Part shown: piece after piece, positions 2,602 to 28,026 of the stretch
Layout of the letters: each line of letters opens with the position of its first letter
How positions within the stretch are numbered: position 1 is the stretch's first letter
Assembly (NCBI GenBank): GCA_054661495.1
Contig: BAAFSQ010000128.1
Location: 1-28,026 of the forward strand
Direction of reading: 5' to 3'
DNA: 28,026 nucleotides
Source of the DNA: Zygophlyctis sp. KS116
Lineage: Eukaryota; Fungi; Chytridiomycota
Made by a program: the position numbers and the translations under genes
The notes under the pieces: generated by a model
What the model saw: the letters and a program-made list of their open reading frames with translations, nothing else
The model's database searches: none
Told to the model about the DNA's origin: nothing

Positions 2602-2692
2602 AACAAGAATCACTAAATTCACTAGTATAGAACTTTACACAATTCTTTTTTATAAAACTAATTAATCGCTAATCAATCTTTTGAAAGATATT

Positions 2693-3142
2693 CATGTCCG
2701 AGCGTCAACTTAGGGCAATAGATTTTGGGGCTCTGCTACAAACAAAAAGAAATTGTTTTGTGATAATTTGAGGAATGATTACAGCTCTAGCCTTGGAATG
2801 CAAAAAGCATTGGTACAATTCATTACTCAAAGGTCAAAATCCTTTAAGAAAAACATTATATTCGCAACAACACATGAAATTTAAAATGTTGAATGCATTG
2901 GAAATGGAGAGATTGGCCACTTTGAGAGGCCTGAAAATAGCCAGTCATGGATTCTCAGACGGTAAAACTCTGAATAAATTTGGTGCTTTTGATTGGAAAA
3001 GTCAAAAATTAAACGTCAGAATGGAGTCGAGCCAGTCTATTATTAAAGCCAATTCTCAAGATCAGTCGGTCAAGGATGCATCCAAAAGGTATTGACTGAT
3101 TACTGAATGCTAGAGAGAAATATAATGGAAAATATTTTGTCT
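2693..3142 (+). repeat. Near-identical duplicate of 68-517
   Basis: Direct comparison from CATGTCCGAG through the first intron and GGAAAATATTTTGTCT shows only a few substitutions. Confidence 0.9.
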
Positions 3143-3558
3143 TTTTGTTCATTTATAGATGTGGATATTCGATTCAGTCTAACATATGGCATGCGGCCAA
3201 TGATGATGGAGTAATTGTCGGAATCTATGATACAGAAGCCGATGCATTCGATATTGCGCAGAAATTCTTGGAAGCATTTAAGGAAGAAGAGCAGTTAGAT
3301 GTTGAAGAAAGAAAATATGATTACTTGGGAAAGGATATTTTGAAAAGATGGTCGTATGATGATGATATGCGATACAAAGAGAAGTACATTGTGATTGTTG
3401 GCAAACTTGGACAAGAAGTAAAAGACTATGTGTTTCCCGGAACATATCTATGTGAAGGATGGAGAAAAGAGGGAATTGATGATTTACTCAAGGATTATAC
3501 AACTAATCTAGTGGATGTAGGATCAACTGTTACACGGGAGGAAGATGAGGAAGATTAA
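2775..3558 (+). CDS. Single-domain paralog of the 150-2601 gene; intron at 3089-3113
   Basis: The first exon translates identically to 150-470. The same 25-nt intron joins it in frame to ORF 3145-3558, which carries one copy of the repeat domain. Confidence 0.78.
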
Positions 3559-3702
3559 AGATTAATATCACTAAATTTACTGGAATGGGAAATTAGTCAA
3601 TGATTAACTGGAATAGAAATTTATGAAATTAACTTTTTCAATGTGACATTTTAATATATCAGCAAATCTTTGTACTGGTGGAGTTATTCTGTTATGAAAG
3701 AC

Positions 3703-3777
3703 TCCGAAACGTCGGAACCTTTTCAGCGGCTGTGCGTGGATGCTTGGAACGCGAAAAAGGGTCCGAAACATCGGAAC
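3703..3777 (+). promoter_or_regulatory. Two copies of TCCGAAACRTCGGAAC (CCG-N6-CGG), candidate Zn2Cys6 binding sites
   Basis: The 16-mers at 3703-3718 and 3762-3777 differ at one base and lie upstream of the likely ATG at 3808. Paired CGG triplets are the usual zinc-cluster recognition elements. Confidence 0.45.
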
Positions 3778-3807
3778 TTAAAACGCGATCAGCTTGTCCA
3801 TCGAATT

Positions 3808-5728
3808 ATGTTGTCCATCAATGCCGCTCCTACCAGCCACCAAGACTCAAGGGGTGATATTCGTCCGAAAGACAAACAGCGTAAAAGGGCTAAAACTGCA
3901 TGCGATGAGTGTCATAAGAAGCGAACCAAATGCGATGGTGGTTCTCCATGTGGACTATGTATCAAGAATATGACTTTTTGTACGACCTCTCGAAAGGTTG
4001 CTAAAAGAGGTCCTAAAGCAGGACATATTGAGCGTTTGGAGTCTCGGGTTAGAATTCTAGAGTCACTTTTGACGCCAGACCAATGGGCGGCTTTGGAACG
4101 GTTGGAAAATAGTAAATCGGACATGAATGCTAGCCAGATAGATGAGGTATTTTGCCTCAAATATCATTTAACTCTTAGTTATCAATGGCAGTGGAAAACG
4201 CTGATAATAACTTGAGATTGGACTTGATTTCTCTGTATTTCAATCATATACACCATAAAATTCCGTTTTTACATGAACATTCGTTTATGCAAAATGTTAG
4301 CTCACATCGGCCTTGTTTGCTAAATGTGATGTATGCTTTGGCCTCTATCTATCAGGAAAATGGGGCAATGGAAGATAGTACAAAGGCGGGAGATTTTTAC
4401 TATCATTTGGCTTCTGAAGAAGTAGTAGGAGCTTCAAATGATGTCACAGACTATCAAATTATTGGGGCTTGCATTTTGCTGTTCAAATATTCAAAAGGTA
4501 TGTTCTAATTAACTGATTCTGCTATCAAATGTAGCATAATTATACTTTTTCTTACATTTAGGTTCTGGACGTATCTCTGATGGTACTAAATTCTATTCTC
4601 AAGGCTGTAATTTGCTGTTAAAATCAAAATTTCATCTGGATCTTCTCTTTTATCCAGAAAGTAATAGTGTAAAGATCCCAGAAACTGAACGGGAGATTAG
4701 AAGACGTCTCTTTTGGATGTATTATGAATATGGGCTGTATGCAGCGTTTGTGTTGGTAATTTATTGTTTGTCATACTTAGGGTAAAACTCCATTATTGTC
4801 TGAAGATATTTATCGTGGAGCATTACCTATGGATGACGAGTCTTTCAATTTGGTAGCTACTCTAGAGCGAAAATATGGGACTTCATATTTCTCTAATGAA
4901 GCAAAGGAAGAGCCTCAGAATAAATCTTATCCTATCCCATTCCCATTAGAAGATTTGCAAGATACAGACGCATTGAATGACTCATTAGCTCATTTGATGC
5001 GGATCCTAAAGGTTTTTGAAAAGATAATGCAGTTCAATCACCGAGGCCCTGGATCTATGGACAACCCCAAATTAGAGCTTGATATCAAGACCTCGCTTCA
5101 TAATTGGAATAAATCTTTCAAAACTTGGGTAGTCAATAGTTCTCTTATATTCGGTGAAAATCTCAAAAAACCTTTCTCTCCATGGATGAGCACATTCTTG
5201 GAAATTATATATAATTTTTGCATAGTATGCTTTCATCGTCCTCAACTATTAAAGGCCTCTGAGCTTTATATTGGTGATAGATCTAAATTCAGTCATCCTT
5301 CGCAACCTATAATTGAAAGTGCTGCAAACGCTGTTTCAAGTGTTTTTCAGAAGTTTGATTTTTCATATTTTTACACGAATGCACCATCATTTACGCACAC
5401 AATTATATTTCAGCTCGGCCTTACTTATGGAATGCTTCTGTTCATAAACCCAGAGTCACCATATTCTACTAGATATTTTCGCGAGATCAATTCCTTTACA
5501 GCATCCCTCTCTCGAATTAGTAGATATTTTTCTCCTGCCCAGATCAAATGGAATGTTCTCAAGAACTTGGCGATCTCACTTCATCGAGAGAAAACTGATC
5601 ACGAGCAAAAAGCAGAAATTATGTTTTTCCGAGAAATTGCAATTGTAGGCCAGCCTCTAATTGGTCCGTATGTATCTCAGAAAGTAGCTATAGAGTACAC
5701 GAAATCTCGAAGTTTATATCGCATATAG
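3808..5728 (+). CDS. Zn(II)2Cys6 transcription factor with fungal-specific TF domain (copy 1). Introns at 4147-4178, 4498-4561 and 4756-4780.
   Basis: ACDECHKKRTKCDGGSPCGLCIKNMTFC zinc cluster. Exon 4562-4755, absent from the ORF track, encodes EREIRRRLFW. Introns of 32, 64 and 25 nt restore the frame. An upstream in-frame ATG exists, so the start is uncertain. Confidence 0.88.
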
Positions 5729-6023
5729 GCATAGTTGGCTTGTAAATCCTTGGATTTTCTGCTCTTTATCTGGAAAGTATTCCTGCATAGTGCTGCAAAA
5801 TATAGTCTTCTTTATTTATTATTCTATGAGAAAAAGTCCGCAATAGTTGTTATATTTTTGTATTGTAATATGCGTGTCCATGATCATAGATTCAGACATT
5901 AGATATTATATTTGGAACTCATTGGATAAAAAGTAAATAGAAAGTGCATTATTATATATATCTTGATTTCCAGCTCATTGCGTAATCATCAAAAATTTCC
6001 TGTAAATTTTCCGTAAGCGAACA

Positions 6024-7968
6024 ATGAATAAAAGAATTTCGTCAAAGTCAAGCCCGGGGGGAGCATCGGAGGGAAGAGAAGATGATAAGCAAAAGCGAAC
6101 CAGGATTGCATGCGATGAGTGTCATAAGAAGCGAACCAAATGCGATGGTGGTTCTCCATGTGGACTATGTATCAAGAATATGACTTTTTGTACGACCTCT
6201 CGAAAGGTTGCTAAAAGAGGTCCTAAAGCAGGACATATTGAGCGTTTGGAGTCTCGGGTTAGAATTCTAGAGTCACTTTTGACGCCAGACCAATGGGCGG
6301 CTTTGGAACGGTTGGAAAATAGTAAATCGGACATGAATGCTAGCCAGATAGATGAGGTATTTTGCCTCAAATATCATTTAACTCTTAGTTATCAATGGCA
6401 GTGGAAAACGCTGATAATAACTTGAGATTGGACTTGATTTCTCTGTATTTCAATCATATACACCATAAAATTCCGTTTTTACATGAACATTCGTTTATGC
6501 AAAATGTTAGCTCACATCGGCCTTGTTTGCTAAATGTGATGTATGCTTTGGCCTCTATCTATCAGGAAAATGGGGCAATGGAAGATAGTACAAAGGCGGG
6601 AGATTTTTACTATCATTTGGCTTCTGAAGAAGTAGTAGGAGCTTCAAATGATGTCACAGACTATCAAATTATTGGGGCTTGCATTTTGCTGTTCAAATAT
6701 TCAAAAGGTATGTTCTAATTAACTGATTCTGCTATCAAATGTAGCATAATTATACTTTTTCTTACATTTAGGTTCTGGACGTATCTCTGATGGTACTAAA
6801 TTCTATTCTCAAGGCTGTAATTTGCTGTTAAAATCAAAATTTCATCTGGATCTTCTCTTTTATCCAGAAAGTAATAGTGTAAAGATCCCAGAAACTGAAC
6901 GGGAGATTAGAAGACGTCTCTTTTGGATGTATTATGAATATGGGCTGTATGCAGCGTTTGTGTTGGTAATTTATTGTTTGTCATACTTAGGGTAAAACTC
7001 CATTATTGTCTGAAGATATTTATCGTGGAGCATTACCTATGGATGACGAGTCTTTCAATTTGGTAGCTACTCTAGAGCGAAAATATGGGACTTCATATTT
7101 CTCTAATGAAGCAAAGGAAGAGCCTCAGAATAAATCTTATCCCATCCCATTCCCATTAGAAGATTTGCGAGCTACTGACACATTGACTGGATCATTGGCT
7201 CATTTAATGCGGATCCTAAAGGTTTTTGAAAAGATATTACAGCTTAATCGATCAAATTCTGAAGAGGATGTTTCTGCGGAAAGCCTGGATTCTAAAAAAT
7301 TAGAATTTGAAATCAAACAATCACTTCAGAATTGGAATAATTCTTTTAAAGCATGGTTAGTCAACCATAATGTGCTGATTCTATCCGATAAGTCAAGCAT
7401 ACCTACATCTCCTTGGATGAGCACATTCTTGGAAATTGTGTATAATTTTTGTATTATTTGCTTTTATCGACCCCGGCTTTTGAAAGAGTTTGAACTTAAA
7501 AATGGCGATAGGTCTACATTCAGTAATACTTCTCACCCTATAATTGAAAATGCAGCAAATGCAGTTTCAAACGTTTTGCATAAGAATGATTTTGCATTCT
7601 TCTTTATAAACGCACCATCATTTACGCATACAATTATTTTTCATCTTGGACTTACCTATGGAATGCTCCTGTTTATCAATCCGGATTCTTCATATTCTAA
7701 TAGGTACAATCGGGAAATCAATTCTTGCATTGCTGCTCTTTCTAGTATTGGACGATACTTCTCTCCTACCAGAAACAAGTGGGATGTTCTTAGGAAATTG
7801 GCCAACTCATTTTACCGCAAGAAAACAGAAGAAGACATTAAAGCTGAATTTTCTCTGTTTAAAGAGAGTATTTTGTTTGGTTATCCTCTAGTTGATCCTT
7901 TTGTGTCTGAAAATCTAATGGAGGAATATGCAAAATCTAGAGAAATAATGGGCGAGACTCTAGCTTAG
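6024..7968 (+). CDS. Zn(II)2Cys6 transcription factor (copy 2, tandem paralog). Introns at 6357-6388, 6708-6771 and 6966-6990.
   Basis: Same architecture offset by 2210 bp, with an identical zinc cluster and middle region but a diverged N-terminus and C-terminal half. Confidence 0.9.
6107..7168 (+). repeat. ~1.06-kb essentially identical duplicate of 3897-4958, introns included
   Basis: Identity read by eye from TGCATGCGATGAG to GAAGATTTGC; one mismatch noticed (4933 vs 7143). Confidence 0.9.
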
Positions 7969-8118
7969 AAATGGCTAACTATTTCTTCAATCTAGTTTAT
8001 GAGAATAAATCTTTTGATAGTAGTTGAATTCTATTTTCAGTAATTATTGGACGGAAAGAGCGCCCTGATCAGCTTACGCCACCAATGATGCTATTATTAG
8101 ATTATTTATAAATTGAGA

Positions 8119-9155
8119 ATGAATCTGAAAAGCTTGGCACAGAATAAGTGGTCCAGTTTACAAACCAATTGGAAAAATTCTAGTCAATCTACAAAAAAGT
8201 CTGTATATGTGATGCTTGCAATATTAGGAGTGATTCTCATTATAGTGCCGACTGTGTGGTGGCAAAACACTCAAAAGGCAGAGAGTCGAATGAATGGATC
8301 TGCACATGAAAAGAGTGAAATTAGTGATGCTAATACTGATGTTATGATTATCGATGTTAAGTTGACCAGTATTAACACTGATGATTATACTTACAGCTTA
8401 CTGATGAAACTGAGACCGACAGGAGGACTAGCACAGATCAGAAGTAACCTCACAATGTTAAATGAATCAATCATTATATTTGTTAAGGGACAAGCTTATG
8501 ACTTTCAGCCCAATCGTCCGATCACAAGTATAGAACTCAAAACCAATTTTGCCTCCGGAACATCTAATAGTTATCCATTTGATGCTTATTTTGATGATTT
8601 AGATGTAACAACTGTAAGGCGAAGTTCTAATGTATTGAGTCTGATTCCAACAAAGGTAAATTATTTCGGAATGTTCAAAAACTATGATGCTAATTGTTAT
8701 TCAGAAAGAACTCAATCAAGGACCGTCTTTCATATATCACTGATGCGATCTGGAACAACTCAATTCTTTTCTGTGTGTATTCTGATCTTAATGTGGGCTC
8801 TTTCATTAACAATTTTAACTTTGGCTGTCACTATTTGGGTTCGTAAGCGGACTGTAGAGCCTCCGGTAATTTTTATATACGGGTTTCTAATATATAGACT
8901 ATCGCAGTTGCTGCAGGACTTTTGTTTGCAATTCCACAATTAAGAAACGTTCAACCAGGAATACCGTCAATTGGATGTGCTGTGGATGCAGTCGGATTCT
9001 TTTGGAATATGGCTTTGATTGCGGTTGCTCTTTTATTGCTAATGTGGAACTATATAATTCACAAGAAGGAAGCACGATCTGATGGACTTACGCCTTTAAC
9101 TCCTTCAATTCCCATGAATTATGGAAGAAAGGCTAGTTTGGAAGCTAAGCCATAG
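8119..9155 (+). CDS. DUF4436-like membrane protein; intron at 8866-8897
   Basis: N-terminal TM helix, YPFDAY motif and C-terminal TMs MWALSL...LLFAIPQLRNVQPGIPSIGCAVDAVGFFWNM, which I recognise as DUF4436-like. A 32-nt intron joins ORFs 8113 and 8922. Confidence 0.78.
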
Positions 9156-13299: not shown

Positions 13300-13700
13300 A
13301 AGTAGTAGCGCTTGAGAGCCGTCCCGATAGTATAGGCTGAGACTGAAACCAAATCAAAGGCTAATGGTCTGTTCGGCAAGTTGTACCAGAGGTAAGAAAT
13401 AAACCGTGATGGTCAAGCATGGTAATAATGGCCAATAATTCTTTTTCATGAACGGGGTACTTTCGTTCATGATCGTTCATTTTACGTGAATAGTCTGTAG
13501 ATAAATAAGTCTGTTTGTCCGGCTCAAAATGTTTCAACACTGGTGCAGTATATAAAGCTTCTAATAGCTTCTGATGAGCTGATCTCTCCTTGTTTCCCCT
13601 GATCCAGTTTGAGTCTTTTCGAGTTAAGTGTGATAAAGGCTGAGCGATCTCAGCACACATTGGAATATAGGCTCGGAACCAGGGGTTCCGACAATACTAT
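13300..13700 (-). mobile_element. Degenerate Ty3/Gypsy pol fragment (RT thumb and RNase H)
   Basis: WFRAYIPMCAEIAQPLSHLTRK...APVLKHF...YSRKMNDHERKYPVHEKELLAII, with an internal deletion and stops. Confidence 0.85.
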
Positions 13701-14249
13701 TGTTTATCTATCGGGTGCTAGAAAACTACCCAATAGATTATTGAGAAATCAAAATTCAATAAGATATATTGTAAATTATTTTTATATATTGTTCACTTTG
13801 ATTTGTCTAGATTTAGAACTTCCTGCAACGTTATTATTCCCCAAAGGTCACGATTTTCAGACTCAAAATACATTGAAAACTGATTTTCTATAATCAGTCA
13901 AAATAAGTGTAAGTTAGTCTTAATCGAAACTTACTTGGAGACACTAAACAATCTATATTTTTCGCATCCGTCACTATTCATACTTTTTCTTTTTAAAGCC
14001 CTTTCCAGCATACTTTGATTTTCCTTAGAGACTATTTCCTCTCTTCGCAGAAGAAAATGTGAAACAAATTGTTATCACATAAATCTTGTAAGGCTGGGCG
14101 TCCATGGTTTGGTTTGGATTGGAAATGATGAACCAAACTATGGGCTTTGCTCTCTCCGAAGATACACTTGATGCTTGAACCGTAAGATAATCCCTCGTCA
14201 TGACCGCTAATATTGGACAATTAAATTGATTATTCTTTCAAAACTGAAA

Positions 14250-15600
14250 AACAGTATTATTGGCCCCATAATCTAAACGTGGCCCATATTCCTCTTCAAC
14301 GTTAACTTCTTTTCATAAATGCTGGTAGTTAGCAACTGATAGAGATGCCTTAGCCGGCGACCTCACTTGCACATCGGCCTTCGTTTTGTAATAGTGAAAG
14401 GAACTTGAAAAATTGCTTTCCACACTTCTTACCCACTCATCTAACCATCCAAGCCTAGCTTTTAAAAAGTTTTTTGGTTCTGGGGTCCAAAATAAGTGCT
14501 ATTCCAGCAATTGGCGAAATTTGGTCATAATAATTCTCTAACTTCTCAATGGCCGCTGAAAGTCCAATATATATATCTTACAGCGAGTACTGACATCAAT
14601 TATGGAACTAGATACTTATTTTTTTTTCTTCACAAACTTGTTCCATTAATCTTCTTAATTTTGGCGATAACCTAATTTTTCTAACCAAAAAGGCTAGACG
14701 GGAGAGTGCTGTCACCATTCTGTCAGTAGAAAAAGACCCAGGATCGTATGTTTCCTTTTCAGTAGGCTGCTTAAAGTTTTAAGAATTTCTGATGCCCCAA
14801 GATTTATAAAATGTGCCATAAACTCAATCTGATTCCATGATACACTAAAGCCTGCTTCAGGAAAGTTAGCATGGTAATAATGTTTAAGATAAGCCATCAT
14901 TGTAGAGTTGTTACTAGCATTGTCCGCAGTAATTCCAAGCAGCCTTTGTGAAATTTCATAGTCTTCCAGTATTTCAATAAACGCCCGAGCCAAACTTTCA
15001 CCGTCATGTTCCTCCTTCAAGAATTTAAAAGCTAACAATCCTTCCTGCAGGTTTCAATCATTATCAATATAGCGAATTGTTAACCTAAAGAAAGACAGCT
15101 GATTCTTAGACGTCAATACATCACATGTGATAGAGAATTTTGATTTGAAAGAATGTAACTTTACCTTTAATTCCGATTTCAAATCATCATACATTGTATC
15201 CAAACGCCTCATGATAGTCCTTCGGGAGTGAACAGTTACATCTTTTTTCAAATATTCCAGCAAATCTTCAAATTCTTCAGCATCCACAATAGCAAACGGT
15301 AAAACTTTCTTGATTAAAAATTTCAGTATCTTTCCCATAAACACATCAACATCAAAATTTATCATTTTCTTGTCTTTAAAGAAATCAGGTTTAGCAGAGC
15401 GTTGCATTTGGGTCGGTGTTGGCAATAATGCTGCACATTTTGCTGGATGATTGTCCCTCAAATGCTTAAAAAAAGTCCCTGTAGATGGACCTTGATAGAT
15501 TTTCGACAGTAGTTGCATTTGTAATGAATAACACTTTTGCCTTTATTTTTTCCATCCTGCACAATTTTCTTTATCTTCTCGCAGTGAGGGGAACAAGCAC
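14250..15600 (-). mobile_element. Degenerate hAT transposase (Ac-like, with BED finger relic)
   Basis: KCNYC...STGTFFKHLRDNHP, LPFAIVD, FSITCDVLTSKNQLSF, EHDGESLA, GITADNASNN and MAHFINL motifs, broken by frameshifts. Confidence 0.85.
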
Positions 15601-15639
15601 TTTTTGATTCTTATAAGTCTTCACTTGCTACCTCATCTG

Positions 15640-16660
15640 GAACTGAGAGGGAGATATTTTTCAAATCAGAAAGCTCTCTGCCAGATGGAATCAGCAACTT
15701 TAATTCATCATCATCCATTTTTTAAATATATTCTTCAAGTCTTAAGGTCCGTTCCATCATCCTATATTTTGAAGACCATCTGGTTGTAGATTCATAGAAA
15801 CAGGCTCTAAGTCAGTAAGTTGTCTTAGCCTTCCAGCCTTCTTAAGATTTGACAAGATCATTATTTGATTAAAATTAACTATAATCTTTTGATTCGGTTC
15901 AAGATATTTCTGCACAGCAAGATTAAATCTATGACTTGTCCAGCCAATAAAAGGGTCAAATCTGCAGTATCAGGATTGGTGTTGGTGTTATCGGCAACCA
16001 TGTAAAGAATATCTTCTTTCTTTCTTTCAGCAAACATTTCCCACTACATCTACAATAAAATCTGCTTGAGTTTGAGCAGTGAATCTGGTTTCATCAAAAG
16101 GAGGGGCCATAGTAAGTAATCTTTCATAGTTTATACCATCTTTTGCATAAGCTGCATATACACCGAAATAATGAGTTCTTCCTTCCGTCCAGCCATCTAT
16201 AACTAAACCAAATTGATTTGGCAATTCTTCCTTTAATTGTTCATCAATAGGAGCTTCGACCAATTTCAAATATTTGTTGAATGTATCCACTGAAATAATC
16301 TCTAAAAGTTTTCTTTCTACGGTAAAAATTGGAAGGTTATCAGTGACAATCCAATTCAACCATGAGTGCAACTGTAAGACCTTTGGATTTGCAATAAAGA
16401 AATAGATTTTCCTTTCAGCGATTTGGGATTATTTCTTTTAAAGTCATTGTAGAGCTGCTCCCAAAAATCATGTTTTCCCCTTATATGAGACATTAGGTTT
16501 GTATATCCAGAACTTTTTTGTTTTTTCGAGTTGTGCCACAGCAACATTGAAAAACTTTATCCTAACCAGACTTAGGGTCACAAATCTCTTTAGTAGTGGA
16601 CTTGTTCTTAATACATGAAAAAAAATATTGAAAAAATATTGTAAAATTATTGACCGTAAT
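15640..16660 (-). mobile_element. Second degenerate hAT-family transposase
   Basis: SGYTNLMSHI, WLNWIVTDNLP, FGLVIDGWT, IGWTSHRFNLAVQ and TRWSSKYRMMER, distributed across shifted frames. Confidence 0.82.
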
Positions 16661-16849
16661 CCCAACCAATGATTAGGCCTAAAAATTGCTGAACTTCCTT
16701 AGGAGAGTTGGGAGGGGTAATATCTAGACCTGGTAGTTTCTTAACATTCGAAGATACTCCCTCTTGAGATAGATAGTGAACTCAGAATTTGACTGAATTT
16801 TTCAAGAATTGACATTTGCTAGATTTTAAATACAATTTATGTTTTCGAA

Positions 16850-18690
16850 GCAGGCTAAAGGTTTGCTCTAGTGTAATCAAATGAGATTTTCGATTTTCCG
16901 TATATAGAAGCAGATCATCCAATAACTATAAATCATAAAACTGACCGAATATTCTATTCATGGCAATCTGCATTGTTGAGGGAGAGTTGGTGAGGCCCAT
17001 GGGCGTCACGTCAAATTCATAATGTCCATAAAGTGTGCGGAAAGCCGTTTTGTGACGGTCTTCTTCCTTCACGAGTATATTATAAAATCCATCTCTTAGA
17101 CCCATAGTGCTAGATACTCTAGCCTCTCTTACCCGATCTCTTAATTCAGATAGATTAGGTGAAGGAGCCTTATTTTAAACTGTGATAGAGTTAAAACTCC
17201 TGTAATCGACACACAATCGAAAGGTCCCATCTGGTTTCTGTGCAAACAATATCATAGCTCCAAAAGGACTAGTAAGGGGTCTTATAAACCCCTTCTCCAT
17301 TAATTCTTCTATTGTGGTCTTTAACACGGATAATTTCTCCTCAGACAATCTACCAATTCCACAAACCGGGGGAAGAGGAGCTCCAGGCTTGATGGCTATA
17401 GAATGATCTTCTGGGCGCGAAGGAGGTGGAATGAGTGGCTTCTCAAATATATCTTGATAATCCAATAAAAGCGTTGCCAATTCAGGATCCACGGGGGAGT
17501 TATTTGTTGTGTCTACAGACCCTTCTGGTTTGTCTATTGACAAGATTCCATAAGTTTCAAATTCTCCATCTTCACAAGATTTTTCAAATTGAATGGTGGA
17601 TAAACACAATGAGTGGCTGACAGAAAATTCCCCAAAGTCAGCTTAATGAAAAGCCCCCCGTCATAAAATTGAACGATCTTTTGAAACCAATCAATCTTCG
17701 TAATAACCACTTAGAGGCAAATGTATATCGGCAATAAAAAATTCTATTTTTTGTGAATAAAGGCCTTGCTTAATATGTGACGTCGTGAATTTATTTTTTC
17801 TCGCGATTGCCCATGAACCGGGGGATAGTACCCGCGTTAATTTTTGGTACATAAAAATTTTAGTGTGTCGCGTGCTGCTCTAGGGTCGGGCATATCAAGA
17901 AACGATAGGTCCATAATATCTTTAGTAGGCGTCTTAATATCGGAAATTTTGATAGGTCTCTCCATACTTGAATCCGATACACTAGACGTAGCTATAACAT
18001 ATTCTTCCACGTATTTAAGCAATTCTTCTTGATAAACGCTGAGAGTTTTAAAATCGGTAGGGTTTAACTCCTCCAATTTATCTTTAAAGTTTATTGTATC
18101 GTTTGCGAAATTCGATTTTATGAAAGTCTTATTTCTTGCTACAAAGCCATCCATATATTTCCGAGCAAGTCTTTTGCGGTATACCCTGTCTCAACTTGAA
18201 AACTTCGAAAAGTATAATAATATTATCTTAGATCTCCTAAAGTAGTTCCTGCCTGTACTATTTATTCAAGCTTCCTAATCGCGTCAAGACGCTGATTAGT
18301 TCCTCGAAAGACGTCGTCTAGACTCGTAATGATGAAATCGAAGTCTTCAGATTCAAAATTAGTAGAGTCCAAAGAAGTCATCAGACGCCTTAGAGTACAT
18401 AAATGAATATTTCATATTGGCATAGCAAGAATTGGGACGATTTAATTCATTTAAGAGTTTGTTTTTAAAGTTTTTACCAAGGTACCATCATAGCTTGGAA
18501 CTTCCAGGAGCCGTCCGCTAACTTTAGGTATTGAAGAAACTTTGAGTGACAGTTCTATCCTACTTTGAATTGTAAAAAGAGAAGATAATTGGGAACCAGA
18601 ATTCATCATCTGAGCATTTTCCCGTCTCAAATGGTCAAAGGCAGTCCTTTGTTCTGCTAGTTGCTGATTCAGCAGCAGCAGTTTTGCCAA
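16850..18690 (-). mobile_element. Degenerate Ty3/Gypsy retrotransposon (gag-like region and RT)
   Basis: KGFIRPLTSPFGAMILFAQKPDGTFRLCVDYR, HKTAFRTLYGHYEFDVTPMGLTNSP and a decayed YxDD (LLDDLLLY). The upstream low-complexity ORFs occupy the gag position; that assignment is weaker. Confidence 0.85.
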
Positions 18691-19190
18691 TTACAAATAC
18701 TGATTGCTGTTTCTTCTGCATCCATTCATTATAAAAAGTAATGAAGCAATCTTGCAGCACATTCTCCTCGATCATTGAAAAAGGTAAGTACTGTTTTGAT
18801 ACTAATTCAGCATTTGCCTCACGGAATGTTTTTTCTTTCTGGAGTTGTTGAGGCATTGTTGTTGAAAATTGGTCTAAAGTGCCTTGTACTAAACCCTCTG
18901 GTAAACTATAAATTACAGTACGTAACTGAAGAAAAAGTGGCACTTCTTGGGCCAATATCAATTCCCATTTGAATGAAAAGCATCCAGACTGGAAGATTCA
19001 GGATGAAAAAGTTAAAAATGGTGGTACTTTTAATAAATATATGGATTCTGATGGTAACTATTCTAAACTTATTTCTAGGAACGAATTGTTATAGATGGAT
19101 ATCTGTTGTTGTTTCTGAAAATCTTCCTTTTAGTTTTGTAGAAAAAGAAATTCTTAGAAGTGTTGTATCACTGAAACCTATCCAGTGAAA
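18660..19190. mobile_element. Two short hAT transposase fragments in opposite orientations
   Basis: Minus strand LVSKQYLPFSMIEE and plus strand WISVVVSENLPFSFVEKEILR, both matching the hAT LPFSxVE motif. Confidence 0.65.
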
Positions 19191-19232
19191 AACTGGTTTG
19201 CACCAGTGAAAAGACTAGTTTGCACCAGTGAA
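19182..19232 (+). repeat. Short tandem repeat, ~21-22 bp unit, about 2.5 copies
   Basis: CCAGTGAAAAACTGGTTTGCA / CCAGTGAAAAGACTAGTTTGCA / CCAGTGAA. Confidence 0.8.
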
Positions 19233-20005
19233 TCATGTTATAAGCTTGTATCGAAAAAGCCCATCAGTTTCTATAAATTATAGTCAGAGAACTTACGTAG
19301 ATATATAGAGTTAGTATGCTTATTGAAGTACTCAACCTGTTTTAAATGGCATTGCAGTCAATAGCTAAAGAGAGAGAGGAAGAGAAACCGGTTTAAAGGC
19401 AGCTCAATGCGTGCCAGTTTCTAAGCCGGAATTATAGTCCTGAGAACAACCGTAAGGTAGACCCAGTCAACTCTACCTCTTTCTCTCTTCAGAACATCAG
19501 GCGCAAGCACTCAAACCAGGTACCCACAGATTGCCGTAGTCAGCCAGCCCAGCTGTTACTAAAATTCCTTGGCAAGACACGAACACCCTTGGATCTTCCT
19601 CTGTCGGTCCCATCTGGATCACTTTTGTCGGGCAGAGACAAAGGAATATTATCCTGAAGTCAGTTAAATAAACTACCCAGAAATTTTCAATAAATCTTGG
19701 AGTCGGCCCGATTAATTCACCTACCTGTATTTGCCAGGGACTTCATTCGTGTGGCGTTTGCGTGTGTTCCCATATAGAGTATACTGAGATTCATATCTAC
19801 CTAATAGACAAGTGTCCGGCTTTGTTCCAAATGAAACCATAGTGTAGCACGATTGGACATTTTCAAATTCAGGTAATCGAAGAACTTCTCTTAGTGTTTG
19901 TTCTACGTAGATTTGCAAATCTGTCAACAGTCCACGGGCTTTGTGAGGAACCCAATCTGGGAAAAACTGACTATTTAAACTTAGCTTAGAAATCATATGT
20001 TGCTG

Positions 20006-20097
20006 GTCAAGATGGCCAATAAGCTTAATTAAACCAAACTCCGAAAAGCCTTCTTCTGCTCACTAACGTGGCGTGGGTTCGAACCCCACTCTGATCA
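20006..20097 (+). pseudogene. tRNA-Leu-like pseudogene or fragment
   Basis: 5' GTCAAGATGGCC resembles a tRNA-Leu start. The 3' half has a variable-arm hairpin CAC-TAAC-GTG and T-arm GTGGG-TTCGAAC-CCCAC, followed by a T run. The D arm and anticodon arm are not recognisable and the acceptor stem pairs poorly. Confidence 0.65.
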
Positions 20098-20238
20098 GAC
20101 TTTTTGACTGAACCCATTGTCAAGGGTTTGACCTACTCCTAAAATTTCCACGAGAAACACCCCTATTTCGGCGCGTACAATTTTTTTATTACTCACAAAG
20201 TCATCTAACTGTAAGAGTGGCTTTGATCAATTATCATA

Positions 20239-20283
20239 CACTTTCCTAGTAAGATATGATTATCATATCTTACTAGGAAAGTG
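20239..20283. repeat. Perfect 45-bp palindrome (22-bp arms, 1-nt centre)
   Basis: CACTTTCCTAGTAAGATATGAT-T-ATCATATCTTACTAGGAAAGTG. Confidence 0.97.
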
Positions 20284-20407
20284 AGCTGCATTTGACCTTC
20301 TGAGTGCTTTCATTTCATGTGTTTGTGTGAATTTTAGGTATAGTTCTTCTTAAGTGTTTCTAAATTCATTCAGGTGTTGGACACTGACAAACCCCTCCCA
20401 CTTGTTA

Positions 20408-21071
20408 TTAGTGTTTCTGTGAAATTAAGAAAGTATTTATTCTACATAAAACTGAGATTTTTTCTGGTGTGAAAGTACCGCAATAAATCACAAAATACCT
20501 TCTCATTTCTATAATTACAACCCAAGTTTGCCTGATTTCTTCCACTGCACCTCCAATTTCATCGTCATTTCGATCTTCATCACAAGCATCGAGAGTCTGA
20601 TTCACGTAATCATCATAGTCACCATGGTGTTCGGCGTACCACAAGTCCAGGTCTGAATCAGTTTCAAAGACAAATCGAAAAGTTGCTTTAGCGGAATTAA
20701 TGGACCACAGCATAGGATTAACATCTGTCCAACTGTACCTTCCAGTTTTGTCAATATTTCTTCACCGATAACATTAAATCCCTTCCACTTAGACCTGACA
20801 CTGCACAGCGCGAATCAAAAGCTTTCAACAAAGTCCTGATTTCCTCGGCATTACGAAAATCATTGTTTGGAGTAACTATTGTGCCCATATGTTTCATATC
20901 TCGAAACATTTGACAAGTTTTTGGAACTGATAGAAGACATTCTCTGTTTTTAAAACGTTTGAACCGTTCTTGGGGAGGAGTAGTTAAGAAATCTTTAATA
21001 ATTTGATCCATTTCAGAAAAAAATTCTGTAAAATTCAGAGAATTATTTGAGTCCAAGTATGGCTTACACAA
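20408..21071 (-). pseudogene. Frameshifted gene with an HNH/His-Me-finger-like motif
   Basis: Joining the two ORFs across a 1-nt shift near 20757 gives RCAVSGLSGRDLMLSVKK-IDKTGRYSWTDVNPMLWSINSAK, resembling the CAxSG...LSxDRID..GY...NV......NxAK HNH-type pattern. Confidence 0.45.
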
Positions 21072-21589
21072 TTTCTGAAGATATCTTTCTCGGTTAGTTT
21101 CTGCTCCAAACTAACTAACCCTAAGTAACCTAAATCTGCCGTGTTCAGGACAGGTTTCAGCTTGGGCTAAAAACAGATAATAATTCACCGACTTCAGTTC
21201 AAGCTGATCTAATCTCAAATCTTCGTATTTAGCCCGTTCTGACGAGGACGTCAGCTAAACTAGTTGGGGGAAGATGTATAGGGGCAGATCAGTTCAGATG
21301 AACGTGTTTAACAGCGTAGGTTTGAGTTTGAGGGGTTAGCCTAAACAAGTAGGTTTGGGAATCTCACAAATGGAAGTACTAGGAAATCAATATAGGTTTT
21401 TTTAATTCTAGGTTAATAATAATTAATTTTATCTATAAGAGTTTCATCTCTTACATTGGCGGAGAACGCCGGCAAAGATTAAAACAAAAGAAAAAATTTA
21501 AAAAGTCTTGAAAAGTACTAAGAAAATGGGAGAAAAATGCCTCCAAGAAAAAGTAAAAATAATGCTGCTAGCTCAAGAAAACTGTAAGA

Positions 21590-21800
21590 TTCAATTCATG
21601 TCCTCACGAAACAAGTTGAATCAATGATCGCTACAATGCTTCCTGATAAGTTCTCACCAATGTTTGCTGGATGGTCGGCCGGTGATACTCATTTTGTAGC
21701 CATTTTTACAACATTCATGCATGAAGGTGAAGAAAACAGTCATTACTGTCTTTTTCTCCTCTGATGGATGAAATGTCACAAGACGCTTCAGATTATTGGA
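21590..21800 (+). mobile_element. hAT transposase fragment related to the 15640-16660 element
   Basis: QVESMIATMLPDKFSPMFAGWSAGDTHFVAIF...LLSFSPLMDE parallels ELPNQFGLVIDGWTEGRTHYFGVY...LLTMAPPFDE. Confidence 0.7.
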
Positions 21801-23196
21801 AAGTATTTCGCAAATATATCTTGGTTTCCCTGTTTCTTTTAAGCCAGAGAAGGTGCCTTCATAAGTCTATGATGTTAATAACCGTCTGGACATAGGATTA
21901 GAGGATTGGTTTTGTTATTTAAAATGTTTTATAGAAGTCACATCTATTTTTGAAGACCTCATGTGAGAAAAAAATCATTTGGTCGTTGTATGTCGATAAA
22001 ACACAGGAATTTCTCTTTGATCCTTCTACCCCGAACCAAAAAATTTACAAAGTTGTATATTATTATATGTATTTGTATAGTATGCATTGAAATTCCTTCC
22101 GGGACAGCATCTAATCTTGGCTGGGCTAAATTAGGGGTAGCTAAAAAGGTTTTGGATCTTTTGATCCCAGTCTCACCTGTGTAAAAACAACTGCTATCTC
22201 TACTAAGTGCAAAAATATTACGATGGATAACTGTTTCTAAGGATTAAAATGCAACTTATTAGGTCATGTCCGAGAATTCACGAATGCTAGTAGCTGAAAT
22301 ACTGATTATAGTAGAGATACCAACTCTTAAACCGTGTATATCTGATAGACATCTAACACAATAAGGAAAAGACAACTTTGACTGCTCATCACATTCAGAA
22401 ACAATAATTTTTGAATCTGAGTATATCAATTGATTTCATGACGAGTGCTTTATATCATCAATCCCGAACAGCTGCTGAAGAAGGCCATTCGAGTGCCTGA
22501 TCGACAATTCTTTCAAATAGCAGTGTTCTACATAAGTCTCTTGAAACAACCTTTGGGTTAGAAGACGGATATTTCTGATTTAGAAAACCAACACAATTCT
22601 TAGAAACAAATATTGTAGAATTCTTATAATTCATATAACTCTTCACGGCTCTACTCTCTTTAATAGTCATCAGTCCTCCAAAGTAAGATCGACCAATTTT
22701 CTCTATCTACAAAATTTCAAGATATCAACCTTGGCGAAGCAGACCCAGAATAGGAAATCACCTTGTCCCTGGTAAGCGTTCATCACACCCAAACTTCCAA
22801 TGAGCTAAAAGCTCTTTTAGAGAATGAGGTGAAACCTCTTTTAAAAATACTCCAAGTCTCGAATGAGAGAATTAACTTGCATACTCAATTGAAGAATCCG
22901 GTCTTTATCTGATTCAGAAATTTGATCTAAATTATATATCATAGATGTTTTCCAGAGCGATTCTTTATTCGGATGGGATCCATAATTTCCTATTGCCGAA
23001 TTTGAGGTTAGTCGTCCTGTTACAGTTTGGACGAAAAGTTGTTCTTCTTCGTTATCGAAGAAGAAAGGAATAGAGGATGATATGGATACCGGAGTTTTTT
23101 TGAAAATTATCATACATGTGTCGTCACTTGTATGATGATGATGTAATGTAACTATTTAATATCTAAATTTAGAAATTAGTCAGAAATTTATTATAA

Positions 23197-23800
23197 ATGA
23201 CAAATCTAACTGATCTCCCACTCGAACTGCAAGATGTGATCAAATCATATCTTTCATGGAGGGGCCAAAGAAATTATCATAATGTAAAAAGAGCATTCGC
23301 TTTGGCACAGGTTTAATCGAAGGAAAGTCTCAAGTTAGAAAAGCATTCAAGAGAGCAATTAGAAAAAGAGCAAATGAAAGAATTGTTAAACAGCTCAACA
23401 CATCCTGATGCTGATACTGCAGCTGATGATAATGATGGTATTATAGAGGCTTCTCAAAATGGTTATGTTGAAATTTTCAAAGTTCTTTCGGCTGATCCTA
23501 GAGCTGATCCTTCAGCTGATGATAATTTTGCTATTCGAACTGCATCTTACAATGGTCGGACTAAAGTTGTCAAAGATCTTATTTGTGATGATAGAGTAGA
23601 TTCTGCTGCTAATAATAATGAGGCCATCAGATATTCTTGTAAGAATGGGCATGTGGATATTGTCAAACTTCTTATTTCTGATCCTAGAGTTGAACCTTCA
23701 GTGTTGGATAATTATGCTATTCGGAAGTCTTCTAAGAATGGTCATTTGGAAGTTTGTAAAATCCTTTGTTATGGTCATTTGGAAGTTTGTAAAATTCTTT
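23197..23800 (+). pseudogene. F-box-like plus ankyrin-repeat gene, disrupted
   Basis: MTNLTDLPLELQDVIKSYL (F-box-like) precedes a stop at 23314. Ankyrin repeats follow (DPRADPSADDNFAIRTASYNG, NEAIRYSCKNGHVDIVKLLISDPRV). The 3' end dissolves into tandem duplications. Confidence 0.7.
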
Positions 23801-23910
23801 GTTGCGTATCTCATTCATATCTCATGTTTAATCTCAAGCATGTAAAATCCATTGTTGCATATCTCATTTTGCATATCTCATGTTTAATCTCGAGCATGTA
23901 AAATCCATAT
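23739..23910 (+). repeat. Local tandem duplications
   Basis: TGGTCATTTGGAAGTTTGTAAAAT occurs twice and CATATCTCATGTTTAATCTCRAGCATGTAAAATCCAT occurs twice. Confidence 0.85.
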
Positions 23911-23949: not shown

Positions 23950-24220
23950 AAACCAGTCAAGCAGCTCTATCAAGTCCTTTTTCATTGGCTTTCGCAAGTT
24001 GTCAATAGGGAAGGGTCTCAAAATCCTAGCCCATATCCTGTTATAAGGGTAGGGTATATGCTGTTGCATCTTGATTAATAATATTTAGATCAATTATTTG
24101 CTTTTTAAAGGTTGATCCCTGACATTTGTAATCTGTTATTGCATAATGACATGTTATTGGCACTTGTTGACGTTTTATTCGAAATATCCGTGCTTCGTGA
24201 TTTCCATAAGGTACTTTTTA
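23950..24220 (-). mobile_element. PIF1-family helicase C-terminal fragment (Helitron-type), degenerate
   Basis: A minus-strand frame not listed in the ORF track reads RIKRQQVPITCHYAITDYKCQGSTFKKQIIDL, then ILRPFPIDNLRKPMKKDL after a frameshift. Confidence 0.75.
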
Positions 24221-24818
24221 ACCTCCCTAATGGACCGAAAAAATTTCTCATAGGAGAATTTTCTTATATCATTATATCTATTCAACTCTAATATTATATA
24301 TATATTATACACTTATTATCTTATACTTATAAACTTCTTTTCTATATTTGATTTGAATGATCAACTTTCAACATTCAACTTTCATCTGTTTATGTGAGAG
24401 TTTCAGAGTTCAACTTTCAACTTTCAACTTTCGGAAAATTAATAAACTCTAAATAATGCGCGAATGAATCAATCATCATAGAAATATATTTCAAGTTTTT
24501 CAATTTGTTTATTATAATAAAATCTGTAAATATATCTGATTGATATCTTTTCCTTGTTCTTCTACTTGAAAATTGACATCTTACGCCCGCTCACGCGGAC
24601 GCGCCACTTGGCATTGGAATATATATTATATTGTTGAGTTTCTTTCAGGTGATAGGCAAATCTGGCTAAGAATCGTCCATCTGAAACCAATAGACATAAT
24701 AATATAAGAGATATTCTGGTTCGAGAAAGAAAAGCTGGTCATTTCCAAGTAAAGAATGACCTCTGTAAAGATATCAGTAAAAGACCAGGAGACCTCACTA
24801 TTTGTAGCATAGCTATTT

Positions 24819-27103
24819 TTATTTAAACATTGTATACTTGTCCAAATCGGACCAAGTCCGTGGAAGTTTATTTGACTTCTCCAGTTTTTGAACTGAGATC
24901 TTGTATTTTGAGGCCATCTCTAAACAAATCTTCATGACCTTGAGTTGTTTGATATTATATCGATTATTTTCAAGTTCAAGCCTGAACCAATCAATAAGAC
25001 TGGCCATCTGCACATAATCTTCAAAATCTGATCGACAGGGGGTTAACTGGTTCTGTACGCATGTTTCTTTGGTATATAATTCTGAAAAATCTGTTTGAGC
25101 TTGATCCAATTCAGGTTCTGTCGAATCACTTTGGTTTCAGTAAGAAAAATATACATTTGTTTCATAACATCTTGTAATTTTAAGAAAGGAATTTCATCAC
25201 GTATACAAATTTCAGAAACGAAATGAGGCATATCCAGCTCTTTTGTTAGATGAGGACAAAGAAAATAATTGGACTGAATAAAATCTATACAGCTGCACAC
25301 CCAGCTTATTTGATTCGTAAAACATCCTGCGTTTTGATTTTTTTGAATCAGTGAGTTCCATTCTCGAAGAAATATATTAAACCATAAAGGAGTTCGCCGT
25401 CCAATCTGGGTTTGTTTGAATTTTAATGCAAATGACGGCAAGAGCCATCTGCACATTATGATAATACATGTGTTTAAATTCTAGTATTAAAAAATTTAAA
25501 TTACAGGCCTGCCAAAATTTGAGAAAAAATCCCGCTTCAATATTCGGTAGTGAGACTCAGCAAACATTGAAGTTCTGTACCTACAGATAAATTTCTCTTG
25601 AGCTGCGCGCATCCATAATTTGCAGTTCTCCATATCATACCATTCTTTCCACAGATAAATCAGTGCATCTAAAAACATATTTTTACAACAATATTCTCTC
25701 ATTTCCTTCCAGGATTCGTCTCGAATCTCTTTAAAAGAAGAATTTCTACCATTTTCATCAGGTATTAAGGGGTGTCTAAGAAAGTGCCTTTTCACCATTT
25801 CCACGATATTGCTGATTTCTTTTTTAGAAGGAACTTGAATGCGATCAATTAATTGAGTATTTAGAAGAATTTGCTTCAAATCATCGTCTAAATTTCTGCA
25901 TGTAAATATATGAGATAATACCTTATAAATTCAGATTTTTTCACATTTTTTGGCTCTGAGAGCCGTCTTTTAACTGCTTTAAGTACATGCCACAAACATA
26001 AAGAAATGGTAGCATCTGACCATACATTTCGTGCCGCCCAAATTTGACCTCGGTCTTTATCCATTTTTATAAATAATGGCCTAATATTCCTTTCATATAA
26101 ATTCAAAAACCTAATATATCATAGTGAATAAATTACCATTCTTTAATAGCGATTTTTCTGTCATAAGCCTGTGAATTTCGGTCCAAGTACAAATAACTCG
26201 CAGGATAACCCTCTCCTTCAAACAGTAGAATTAAAGCGAATAGTTCTAACCCCTCCCGATTGGATTTGAAAGTAGAATCAACAAATATGTATCTGCAATC
26301 AAATCCTAAAAATTCCGTATGAAAACAAACATGTTTTTGAGGAATGTTCAATATTATATCTTGGTAATTACACCTTTGTAGAGCATCCTGAAAAGAGTCC
26401 ATAGAATTAAGCCCATTTATTTTTGACCAGATGTAAGAAATCTAATGAGTTATACCAAAAAAAGTAACATACTTGCTTAATAGTGAGGCTCAAAAGCCGA
26501 TCTGGACCTTCCTTGGCTTTAAGCTCTCTAAATATTTGAGCAGGAGTTGAGGTGAGACTCATTTTTTCTATCATACAAATCAATTCATCATCCAACGTCC
26601 TCTTTACTGTGGGGTGATCAATATCGTGTCGTATCATCACAGAGATATAGGTTTCATTTAAGTGGACGTATAAACATCCATTGCATGAATATCTCTCATA
26701 TCCAAAGTTCAGTCTCTGGCGTTTAGTAGGCCCCTTTCCCTTAAATTCTATAGAAAGACTGCATTTTCCATAATAATGACAAGCAATAGATTTATCACAT
26801 CTAAAAGGTAAATGTTCTTGAAATATACCTAAATTTTAATCCAGTTTTTTCAAAAATGAGATCAGAAGTATCACTGCAGAATTCCTCAAATGTGTAATCA
26901 TCAGTAATGCCGTCATTTGGCATTAAAATGTAGGAGAGCGGTAGTACTTCAAGTGACTGAAGCTCATCCAAATCATCAATTGTGAACAGTTGACTCGATA
27001 GACGTGGCTTCTTCAAACATTTGAAGCATAGTTTATTGAGATTCCCTGATTCATTTAAGTGATCAATGGGTAGAGTAAAACGGTCGCATTTGTGGCAGTA
27101 CAT
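24819..27103 (-). mobile_element. Apparently intact Mutator-like (MULE) DDE transposase with SWIM finger, ~707 aa. Introns at 26801-26828, 26442-26472, 26111-26136, 25896-25921, 25481-25504 and 25129-25154.
   Basis: FVDSTFKSN (D1), KMDKDRGQ (D2), LCLWHVLKA, RTSMFAESHYRILK (E) and WVCSCIDFIQSNYFLCPHL (SWIM). Six GT-AG introns of 28, 31, 26, 26, 24 and 26 nt give a continuous 2124-nt frame. Confidence 0.88.
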
Positions 27104-27110
27104 AAAAAAT

Positions 27111-28026
27111 TTATTTTGAAGGCACCAACCCCTTATTTAATCTAAATAAATTAAATCTCGCTCTCCCTTGAGCAGTAGATAAAATATTGTCCAGTGGATT
27201 TATCTTTAGAGTATATAGCTCTTTTCCCGAGTTCCTGTTTGAAGCAGATAAAGTGACTTCGACCTCTCCAAATTCAACAATTTCCATCAATTTGAATATT
27301 TTTTTGATGTCATCTTCATCACGAAGAATCTTCGATCTAAGAATGTCTGAAATGGAAAAAAAATTTCCTTTGAGATACATAATCCTAATCTTATGCAAAT
27401 GAAATGCTACCTTTGTACAATAGAAACCACCGGAGGTGGAGGATGGATTGCCAAAGCTTCCAGGTCCTCTTCAGGCATTGGTTGAGGTGTCTCTAAAACT
27501 CCATCCTTTAATATTATTCTAAATTATAACTGAAACATATTTACCTTTGCCGCATAAAATATTCTCCAAGATTTAGAGCCTTATCAACGATAGCAGGATT
27601 AATGGCCAGAAGAATATTTTCATCGCATAAAGCCTTTTATTTAGAGTTAATAATCACCTCTTCAATTATGTGAAGAACAGCAGAAAGCCTCAATACTGTG
27701 CCCGGTAGTTTAGCATATTCTCCTACATAGTGTTCATCAGTGTTTTGCTTCTTTTTTGAATTAATTAGATTATAGACGTTATCAAAGCCATAGTTTTCAA
27801 AATAAAAAAAAACTTTTTTTGGATCTTCCTTAAATGTAAAAATTTTTAAATATACCTGAGAAGAATAATCAATGAACCTTATTTTTGAATGAAAAAATTT
27901 AAAGACTCTCAAATAAAAGTCTTTGGTTAATTTTAATAAATTACCAAAAAGAATTTTGGATTCAAATCGATTTTTACGAATTTGATCAAGAGTTATACAT
28001 TCAGAATTAAAACACGTAGGAATAAA
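27111..28026 (-). CDS. DUF3987/YfjI-like protein, 3' part (runs off the window). Introns at 27634-27657, 27519-27544 and 27385-27410; possible in-frame introns at 27829-27855 and 27921-27944.
   Basis: The spliced product reads YAKLPGTVLRLSAVLHIIEEALCDENILLAINPAIVDKALNLGEYFMRQR, then a Pro-rich linker and a winged-helix-like tail. This resembles the C-terminal part of DUF3987 proteins. The ATPase motifs would lie outside the window. Confidence 0.6.

Follow-up and report, generated by a model that had tools for sequence, protein, structure and literature searches.

Accessory ORFs are known from several groups of Mutator-like elements (MULEs), namely MuDR (mudrB), Mutyl (mutB), Hiun/VANDAL (vanB-vanC) and the MULE-Mucorales group, which a MULE survey (PMC6446971) describes with a DDE/CxxH/SWIM transposase, short TIRs, 8-11 bp TSDs and a second ORF inside the TIRs. 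The word 'ATPase' is absent from that survey, and the passages and table rows consulted name no ATPase partner and list no helicase among the accessory ORFs. The closest described pairing is that of KolobokH and AcademH, eukaryotic (fungal) DDE-type transposons which encode a helicase of the RecQ/DEAD type (SF2), lying in KolobokH downstream of the transposase domain (PMC9587614, PMC10799480). The DUF3987 family comprises SF6 helicases that form oligomers, and a C-terminal winged helix has been described for it (PMC4889955); among them, unwinding has been shown only for AgaPH, in the 5'-3' direction (PMC11724360). Here we describe an element which resembles the accessory-ORF MULEs in its transposase motifs, TIRs, TSDs and second ORF inside the TIRs, but differs from them in the asymmetry of the outer 7 bp of its ends. 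Unlike KolobokH and AcademH, it combines a MULE transposase with a separate AAA+ gene of the SF6 type, and this helicase-family gene is placed upstream of the transposase gene. A sequence-only reading of the locus had considered the pairing to be new, and our literature searches found no paper that describes MULE and DUF3987 together.

The window (the whole 28,026-nt stretch analysed, from the chytrid Zygophlyctis sp. KS116) is the entire contig C128 within a 12.7 Mb assembly of 1,175 contigs. The 3' four fifths of the Mutator-like element occupy 24219-28026 on the minus strand, and about 1,074 bp more, as judged from L073, lie beyond the contig end at 28026, which gives a total of about 4.9 kb. 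L073, an ENA metagenome contig (protein P0087) with 99.8% identity to the window, supplies the missing 5' half of the element, including the 5' TIR at its position 60; in addition, a contig of the likely source run extends 865 nt past 28026. The 5' junction was predicted from the 3' flank in the window and the 5' end in L073 and then searched for in the genome. It is present there once, at G000:C137:63-87, with the identical 9 bp (AAAAGTACC on the minus strand) that make up the 3' TSD copy at 24210-24218 (-). The extension past the contig end proposed with the sequence-only reading was thus obtained, from L073 for the sequence and from C137 for the junction. C167, also considered for the 5' part that the window lacks, was rejected, as it belongs with C598 instead (100% to L079).

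The 3' end of the element (24219-24251, -) consists of 7 asymmetric outer bases followed by a TIR of about 26 bp which matches the 5' end in L073. Within the element family, these outer 7 bp consist of AT and five variable bases on the 5' side and of a conserved motif on the 3' side. Subterminal TTCAACTTT-type repeats (24360-24441, without assigned strand) are common to other copies, are also found near 5' ends and are likely transposase-binding sites. The start of the DUF3987 gene lies about 190 bp in from the 5' end. In a contig from another sample the flank matches up to 24218 and unlike sequence follows, as it would at an empty site or in a paralogous flank, and a window-type copy in one other population has a nonsense change in the transposase.

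The neighbourhood of the element was also surveyed. A PIF1/Helitron-helicase-like C-terminal remnant, recognised by eye and with no Pfam match, adjoins the 3' end of the element at 24046-24217 (-). Elsewhere the window contains tandem ORFs of a repeated unit of about 150 aa at 150-3558 (+), with no Pfam match and interleaved with two identical 106-aa ORFs; a Zn2Cys6 transcription factor gene and its tandem duplicate at 3655-7968 (+), near-identical in the front and diverged in the back; a DUF4436 membrane protein gene at 8101-8940 (+, E 3.5e-16); decayed elements at 13364-22900, with an RT-RNase H match at 13364-13696 and Ty3-like and hAT-like pieces seen by eye; and an ankyrin-repeat ORF at 23374-23901 (+).

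Splice models confirmed that removal of tiny introns (24-31 nt) leaves two co-oriented, stop-free genes, as had been read from the sequence. The upstream gene (28026-27111, -) has 5 GT-AG introns of 24-27 nt and encodes 262 aa within the window up to a TAA at 27113-27111, its exons being 28026-27945, 27920-27856, 27828-27658, 27633-27545, 27518-27411 and 27384-27111. The MULE gene (27103-24819, -) has 6 introns of 24-31 nt and encodes 707 aa in exons 27103-26829, 26800-26473, 26441-26137, 26110-25922, 25895-25505, 25480-25155 and 25128-24819. The upstream stop and the transposase ATG at 27103 are indeed separated by only 7 nt (27110-27104, -). This short spacing, which had been put forward as a feature of the pairing, proved to be special to the window copy: spacers across copies measure 7, 36, 49, 53, 55, 60, 70, 71, 71 and 207 nt. 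Translational coupling or a fused ORF was therefore rejected as a family trait, the transposase start M-x-C-x-x-C also being conserved among copies.

The introns are no artefact of model fitting: 8 positions in the upstream gene are common to all seven intact copies, the size is uniform (23-30 nt in 63 of 64 introns), and elsewhere in the window a WD40 gene of the host has a 25-nt GT-AG stretch at a frame shift. The DUF3987 gene has 8-10 tiny spliceosomal introns across the element family, in patterns consistent with both gene trees (DUF3987 and MULE). The 24-nt stretch 27657-27634 was considered as the premature stop of a pseudogene and rejected, since every one of the seven intact copies has an intron at that position.

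From its N-terminus, the window transposase shows CxxC...CxxC, followed by the DDE, CxxH and SWIM motifs. The DDE and SWIM motifs named in the earlier reading are all present: D in VDSTFK (aa 256), D in MDKD, CLWH, E in AESH, and SWIM. DSTFK, MDKD, CLWH and AESH are conserved in 8/8 copies (one with DSTYK), and by inspection a W lies about 18 aa ahead of the catalytic E. One window exon matches Pfam MULE (PF10551) with 22.2 bits (E 2e-4), below the cut-off of 27.6 because introns split the domain, and the sister copies C484 (34 bits), C598 and C693 pass the cut-off. Atlas look-alikes of the transposase are eukaryotic clusters, which is weak evidence on its placement among the 50 described MULE clades. 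By every feature testable here, the element belongs to MULE. By analogy with Muta1 (PMC5499845), the transposase would most likely cut and join the element ends.

The window holds the 3' half of the DUF3987 gene (27111-28026, -), with the lid/sensor-2 helix (KLPGTVLR) and the C-terminal winged helix, while the segment encoding Walker A, Walker B, sensor 1 and the arginine finger falls outside the contig. The full protein of 495-511 aa is intact in L073 (510 aa, stop-free), C431, C513, C138, L066, L078 and L079. Database searches were made exon by exon, and joined proteins were used for frame checks, trees and local alignments. The window piece alone gave a Pfam E of 0.12, a hint only; with the N-terminal half taken from other copies, the DUF3987 score was 56.8 bits against a cut-off of 27, and the metagenome copy of the window element (L073/P0087) also passes this cut-off. 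The ATPase core was modelled with a pLDDT of 91.6 and aligned to DUF3987 clusters with TM 0.81-0.86. The first assignment of the gene as DUF3987-type was thus upheld by score and by fold. Phage primase-helicases in BFVD matched the core (E 7e-12), and PHROG 'DNA helicase' matched the protein (E 1.5e-9). Among solved structures the core found generic AAA+ proteins only (MCM, ClpX, ORC, Clp, TnsC and MuB), tied at Z 7-8, and a search of PDB sequence profiles gave no match. The last exon was modelled as a winged helix (pLDDT 85) with winged-helix proteins as top structural matches (best Z 7.6, which is middling; rmsd 1.5 over 60 residues). The upstream gene is a DUF3987 (SF6/MCM-like) AAA+ protein with a winged-helix tail.

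The DUF3987 copies conserve the Walker A Lys-Ser/Thr, the catalytic Glu, the arginine finger, the sensor-2 Arg and a basic hairpin. Of the Walker motifs and primase to be looked for after the first reading, the Walker A Lys and the catalytic Glu were found, Walker B is altered and a primase is absent. Walker B reads NE in every element copy, whereas 42 of 43 distant homologues have DE there; at sensor 1 the element copies carry H, and 39 of the 43 homologues carry Q. With these two replacements, ATP hydrolysis may be slow or altered. Helicases of the D5/P4 type function without the Walker B Asp, and the NE is therefore no proof of lost activity. The protein has about 110 aa ahead of Walker A, and the full-length copies contain two genes only, with no primase, polymerase or HUH domain.

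DNA searches and exon-wise protein searches revealed many diverged copies in the genome. The second transposase exon matches 10 contigs, 9 of which have upstream sequence, and same-strand DUF3987 sequence is present there in all nine. A search for the same pair, termini and TSDs yielded complete copies in C431 (4,648 bp), C513 (4,670 bp) and C138 (4,631 bp), each with short TIRs and exact TSDs. The TSD measures 9 bp in C431, C513 and window/C137 and 8 bp in C138, the four TSDs have no common sequence, and L066 showed no TSD. TIRs range from 23 to 32 bp among copies and whole elements from 4.6 to 4.9 kb. Both ORFs are intact in C431, C513, C138, L066, L073 and L079. At least five intact families occur in the genome, most of them at about one intact copy each, with transposases 39-48% identical to that of the window. 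In another sample, a C138-type copy with 99.5% identity adjoins other sequence on its 3' side, which points to recent movement. Three other MULE loci of the genome showed no DUF3987 match within about 3 kb, and some DUF3987 relics have no transposase nearby (C236). The two-gene Mutator-type mobile element that had been proposed is thus borne out by the pair at all nine informative loci, the TIRs and the TSDs of 8-9 bp, and we regard it as almost certain that it represents an autonomous family of DNA transposons.

At L067:1037-1046, and also in L075, the 5' ends of two families lie head to head with an 8-nt spacer, and the reverse complement of the L067 junction recurs in L074, where it flanks the C138-type copy on the 3' side. 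This single L067/L075 junction could reflect end-directed targeting or site reuse. Two transposase 3' parts are arranged tail to tail in G000:C149 (L011:7866-9836), and two 5' ends stand in tandem in C704 (L036:1904-2061). At G000:C131:7618-10210 a DUF3987 relic is followed 1.3 kb later by a same-strand NDC10_II match. A DUF3987 and Crypton recombinase pair at C403 (L018:3434-7500) was rejected, as the Crypton/NDC10-type gene is nested in a decayed element copy, after a transposase N-terminal remnant.

Between families, pS values of 0.67-0.79 are saturated, and dN is 0.22-0.56 for DUF3987 and 0.31-0.68 for MULE. Both genes are under purifying selection, and DUF3987 is usually more conserved than the transposase. 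The DUF3987 and MULE trees disagree at full support over C513 and C484, whose partners are swapped. When the split of one gene was imposed on the tree of the other, AU tests on groups picked after the trees were seen rejected it in both directions (p 1e-6 and 1e-7). Strict co-inheritance of both genes was rejected accordingly (Mantel r 0.18, p 0.15; AU tests against it). The swaps took place between transposases only about 40% alike. Taken with the constant arrangement, the conflicting trees indicate that the gene layout was kept while partners were exchanged.

Close DUF3987 homologues (55-82%) are all short, exon-sized pieces, and those that could be placed come from contigs arranged in the same way (L066, L073, L074, L076, L078, L079 and L081). 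Most belong to the host organism or its close relatives; the copies in L078 and L081 are divergent (<70% DNA identity in genes), and the L081 pair was located from the transposase side. The metagenomes containing copies are from freshwater, which together with the Zn2Cys6 genes of the window suggests an aquatic, fungus-like host. An IMG/VR search gave no match, and a JGI metagenome pattern scan found one short contig only. Beyond the element clade, the next DUF3987 relatives are about 25-35% identical and are bacterial or phage where placed, so a prokaryotic origin of the gene is likely. A wider eukaryotic spread may exist, since the searches detect spliced eukaryotic genes poorly. The searches found no host-like single-copy DUF3987 orthologue; as the full protein matches DUF3987 and the transposase copies adjoin it, the proposed pairing stands.

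The partner very probably has a selected role in transposition. The predicted role is unwinding or translocation, to which we assign about an even chance; it is favoured because the family consists of helicases (PMC11724360) and because partner swapping disfavours a tight cognate interface. Judged from the gene trees, the swapping would be easier to reconcile with an action on DNA than with close contacts between the two proteins. The upstream protein would then be a transposition helper acting on DNA and not on one cognate transposase. It would load as a ring at a nicked or broken donor end and unwind or translocate, upon which host polymerases would either duplicate the element or restore the donor site, with a rise in copy number. 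The partner has no primase, hence it would not constitute a replisome. Muta1, which transposes in yeast and in vitro without any partner (PMC5499845), counts against a needed helper.

The main rival is that the partner serves as a target-capture factor or a transposase activator under ATP control, like MuB, TnsC or IstB, which would coat target DNA and recruit or license the transpososome with no unwinding. We consider this somewhat unlikely. Mu, Tn7 and IS21 likewise have a DDE transposase next to an AAA+ gene, the changes in Walker B and sensor 1 may be compatible with a slow switch, and the L067/L075 junction, in which 5' ends from two families face each other across 8 nt, is a hint of end-directed targeting. 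Moreover, maize mudrB is apparently required for integration (PMC6446971). However, the protein belongs to the DUF3987/SF6 family, with TnsC and MuB only among its generic AAA+ matches; the genes were swapped between transposases of such low likeness, and the TSDs share no sequence. The mismatch with the MuB, TnsC and IstB families nevertheless leaves room for a similar way of working.

A role of the partner following or accompanying strand transfer, in which it would dismantle the transpososome or clear nucleosomes or silencing complexes from the element, is improbable. The AAA+ fold is common to remodelling ATPases, and MULE accessory genes include the anti-silencing factor vanC (PMC6446971), but DNA helicases are its nearest relatives in both sequence and structure, and the sequence gives no sign of a protein substrate. 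Still less probable is a gene that merely travels along, captured from the host as in Pack-MULEs and contributing nothing to transposition. MULEs do capture host genes (PMC6446971), and relics such as C236 have no transposase nearby. The gene has, however, stayed intact, with position and orientation unchanged, while synonymous sites diverged to saturation and partners were swapped, it is usually the better conserved of the two, its next relatives outside the element clade are bacterial or phage where they could be placed, and the searches turned up no host-like single-copy orthologue. Whereas Pack-MULEs are non-autonomous, carry host gene fragments and lack long-term conservation, the present element is autonomous and carries a complete gene under purifying selection. 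The least credible reading, a self-replicating element with its own replication machinery, draws on bacterial and phage DUF3987 being usually fused or linked to primases (PMC4889955), as in P0011 (Prim-Pol + DUF3987), and is largely refuted by the gene content of the full-length copies, the short stretch before Walker A and the number of intact copies, about one in most families. Of the first suggestion that the element has its own replicative helicase-like partner, a helper ATPase is thus well supported, and the replicative part is not supported, given the lack of primase and polymerase.

The helper reading can be set against known systems. With the DUF3987/YfjI SF6 helicases (AgaPH; phage Corndog) the partner shares the AAA+ core, the family Walker A variant, the arginine finger, the lid and the C-terminal winged helix. 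Unlike DUF3987/YfjI proteins of phages and integrative elements, it has no primase partner, contains introns, differs in Walker B and sensor 1 and resides in a eukaryotic DDE transposon; it is thus a phage/bacterial-type SF6 helicase gene that gained introns in a eukaryote. In Mu (MuA/MuB), Tn7 and CAST (TnsB/TnsC) and IS21 (IstA/IstB), a DDE transposase is paired with an AAA+ ATPase gene. Compared with these, the present element has another AAA+ family and another transposase family, and the likeness is one of generic fold only. To our knowledge, ATPase-assisted DDE transposition (Mu, Tn7, CAST, IS21) is known only from prokaryotes. The IS256 family (ISCth4) comprises prokaryotic relatives of MULE transposases with an 8-bp TSD and a copy-out pathway which needs unwinding and synthesis (PMC7780238). 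In that family host replication is used and no helicase is carried, and no circle junction was found in the present element.

It is a tentative suggestion, short of an even chance, that a eukaryotic DDE transposon lineage took a phage/bacterial ring-type ATPase as an obligatory part of its pathway, either as IS256-like copy-out with its own helicase or as a counterpart of MuB/TnsC. If true, transposition would proceed here by a mechanism so far undescribed for eukaryotes. Little is settled on what accessory genes such as mudrB and the RecQ genes of KolobokH/AcademH do in DNA transposons of eukaryotes; as the present family is small, with two genes, several intact natural variants and defined ends, the helper role is directly testable in a Muta1-like yeast assay. 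Its second conserved gene, predicted to encode a DNA motor of the ring type otherwise known from phages and bacteria, sets the family apart from described Mutator elements, and this pairing suggests an undescribed helper step in the movement of a eukaryotic DNA transposon.
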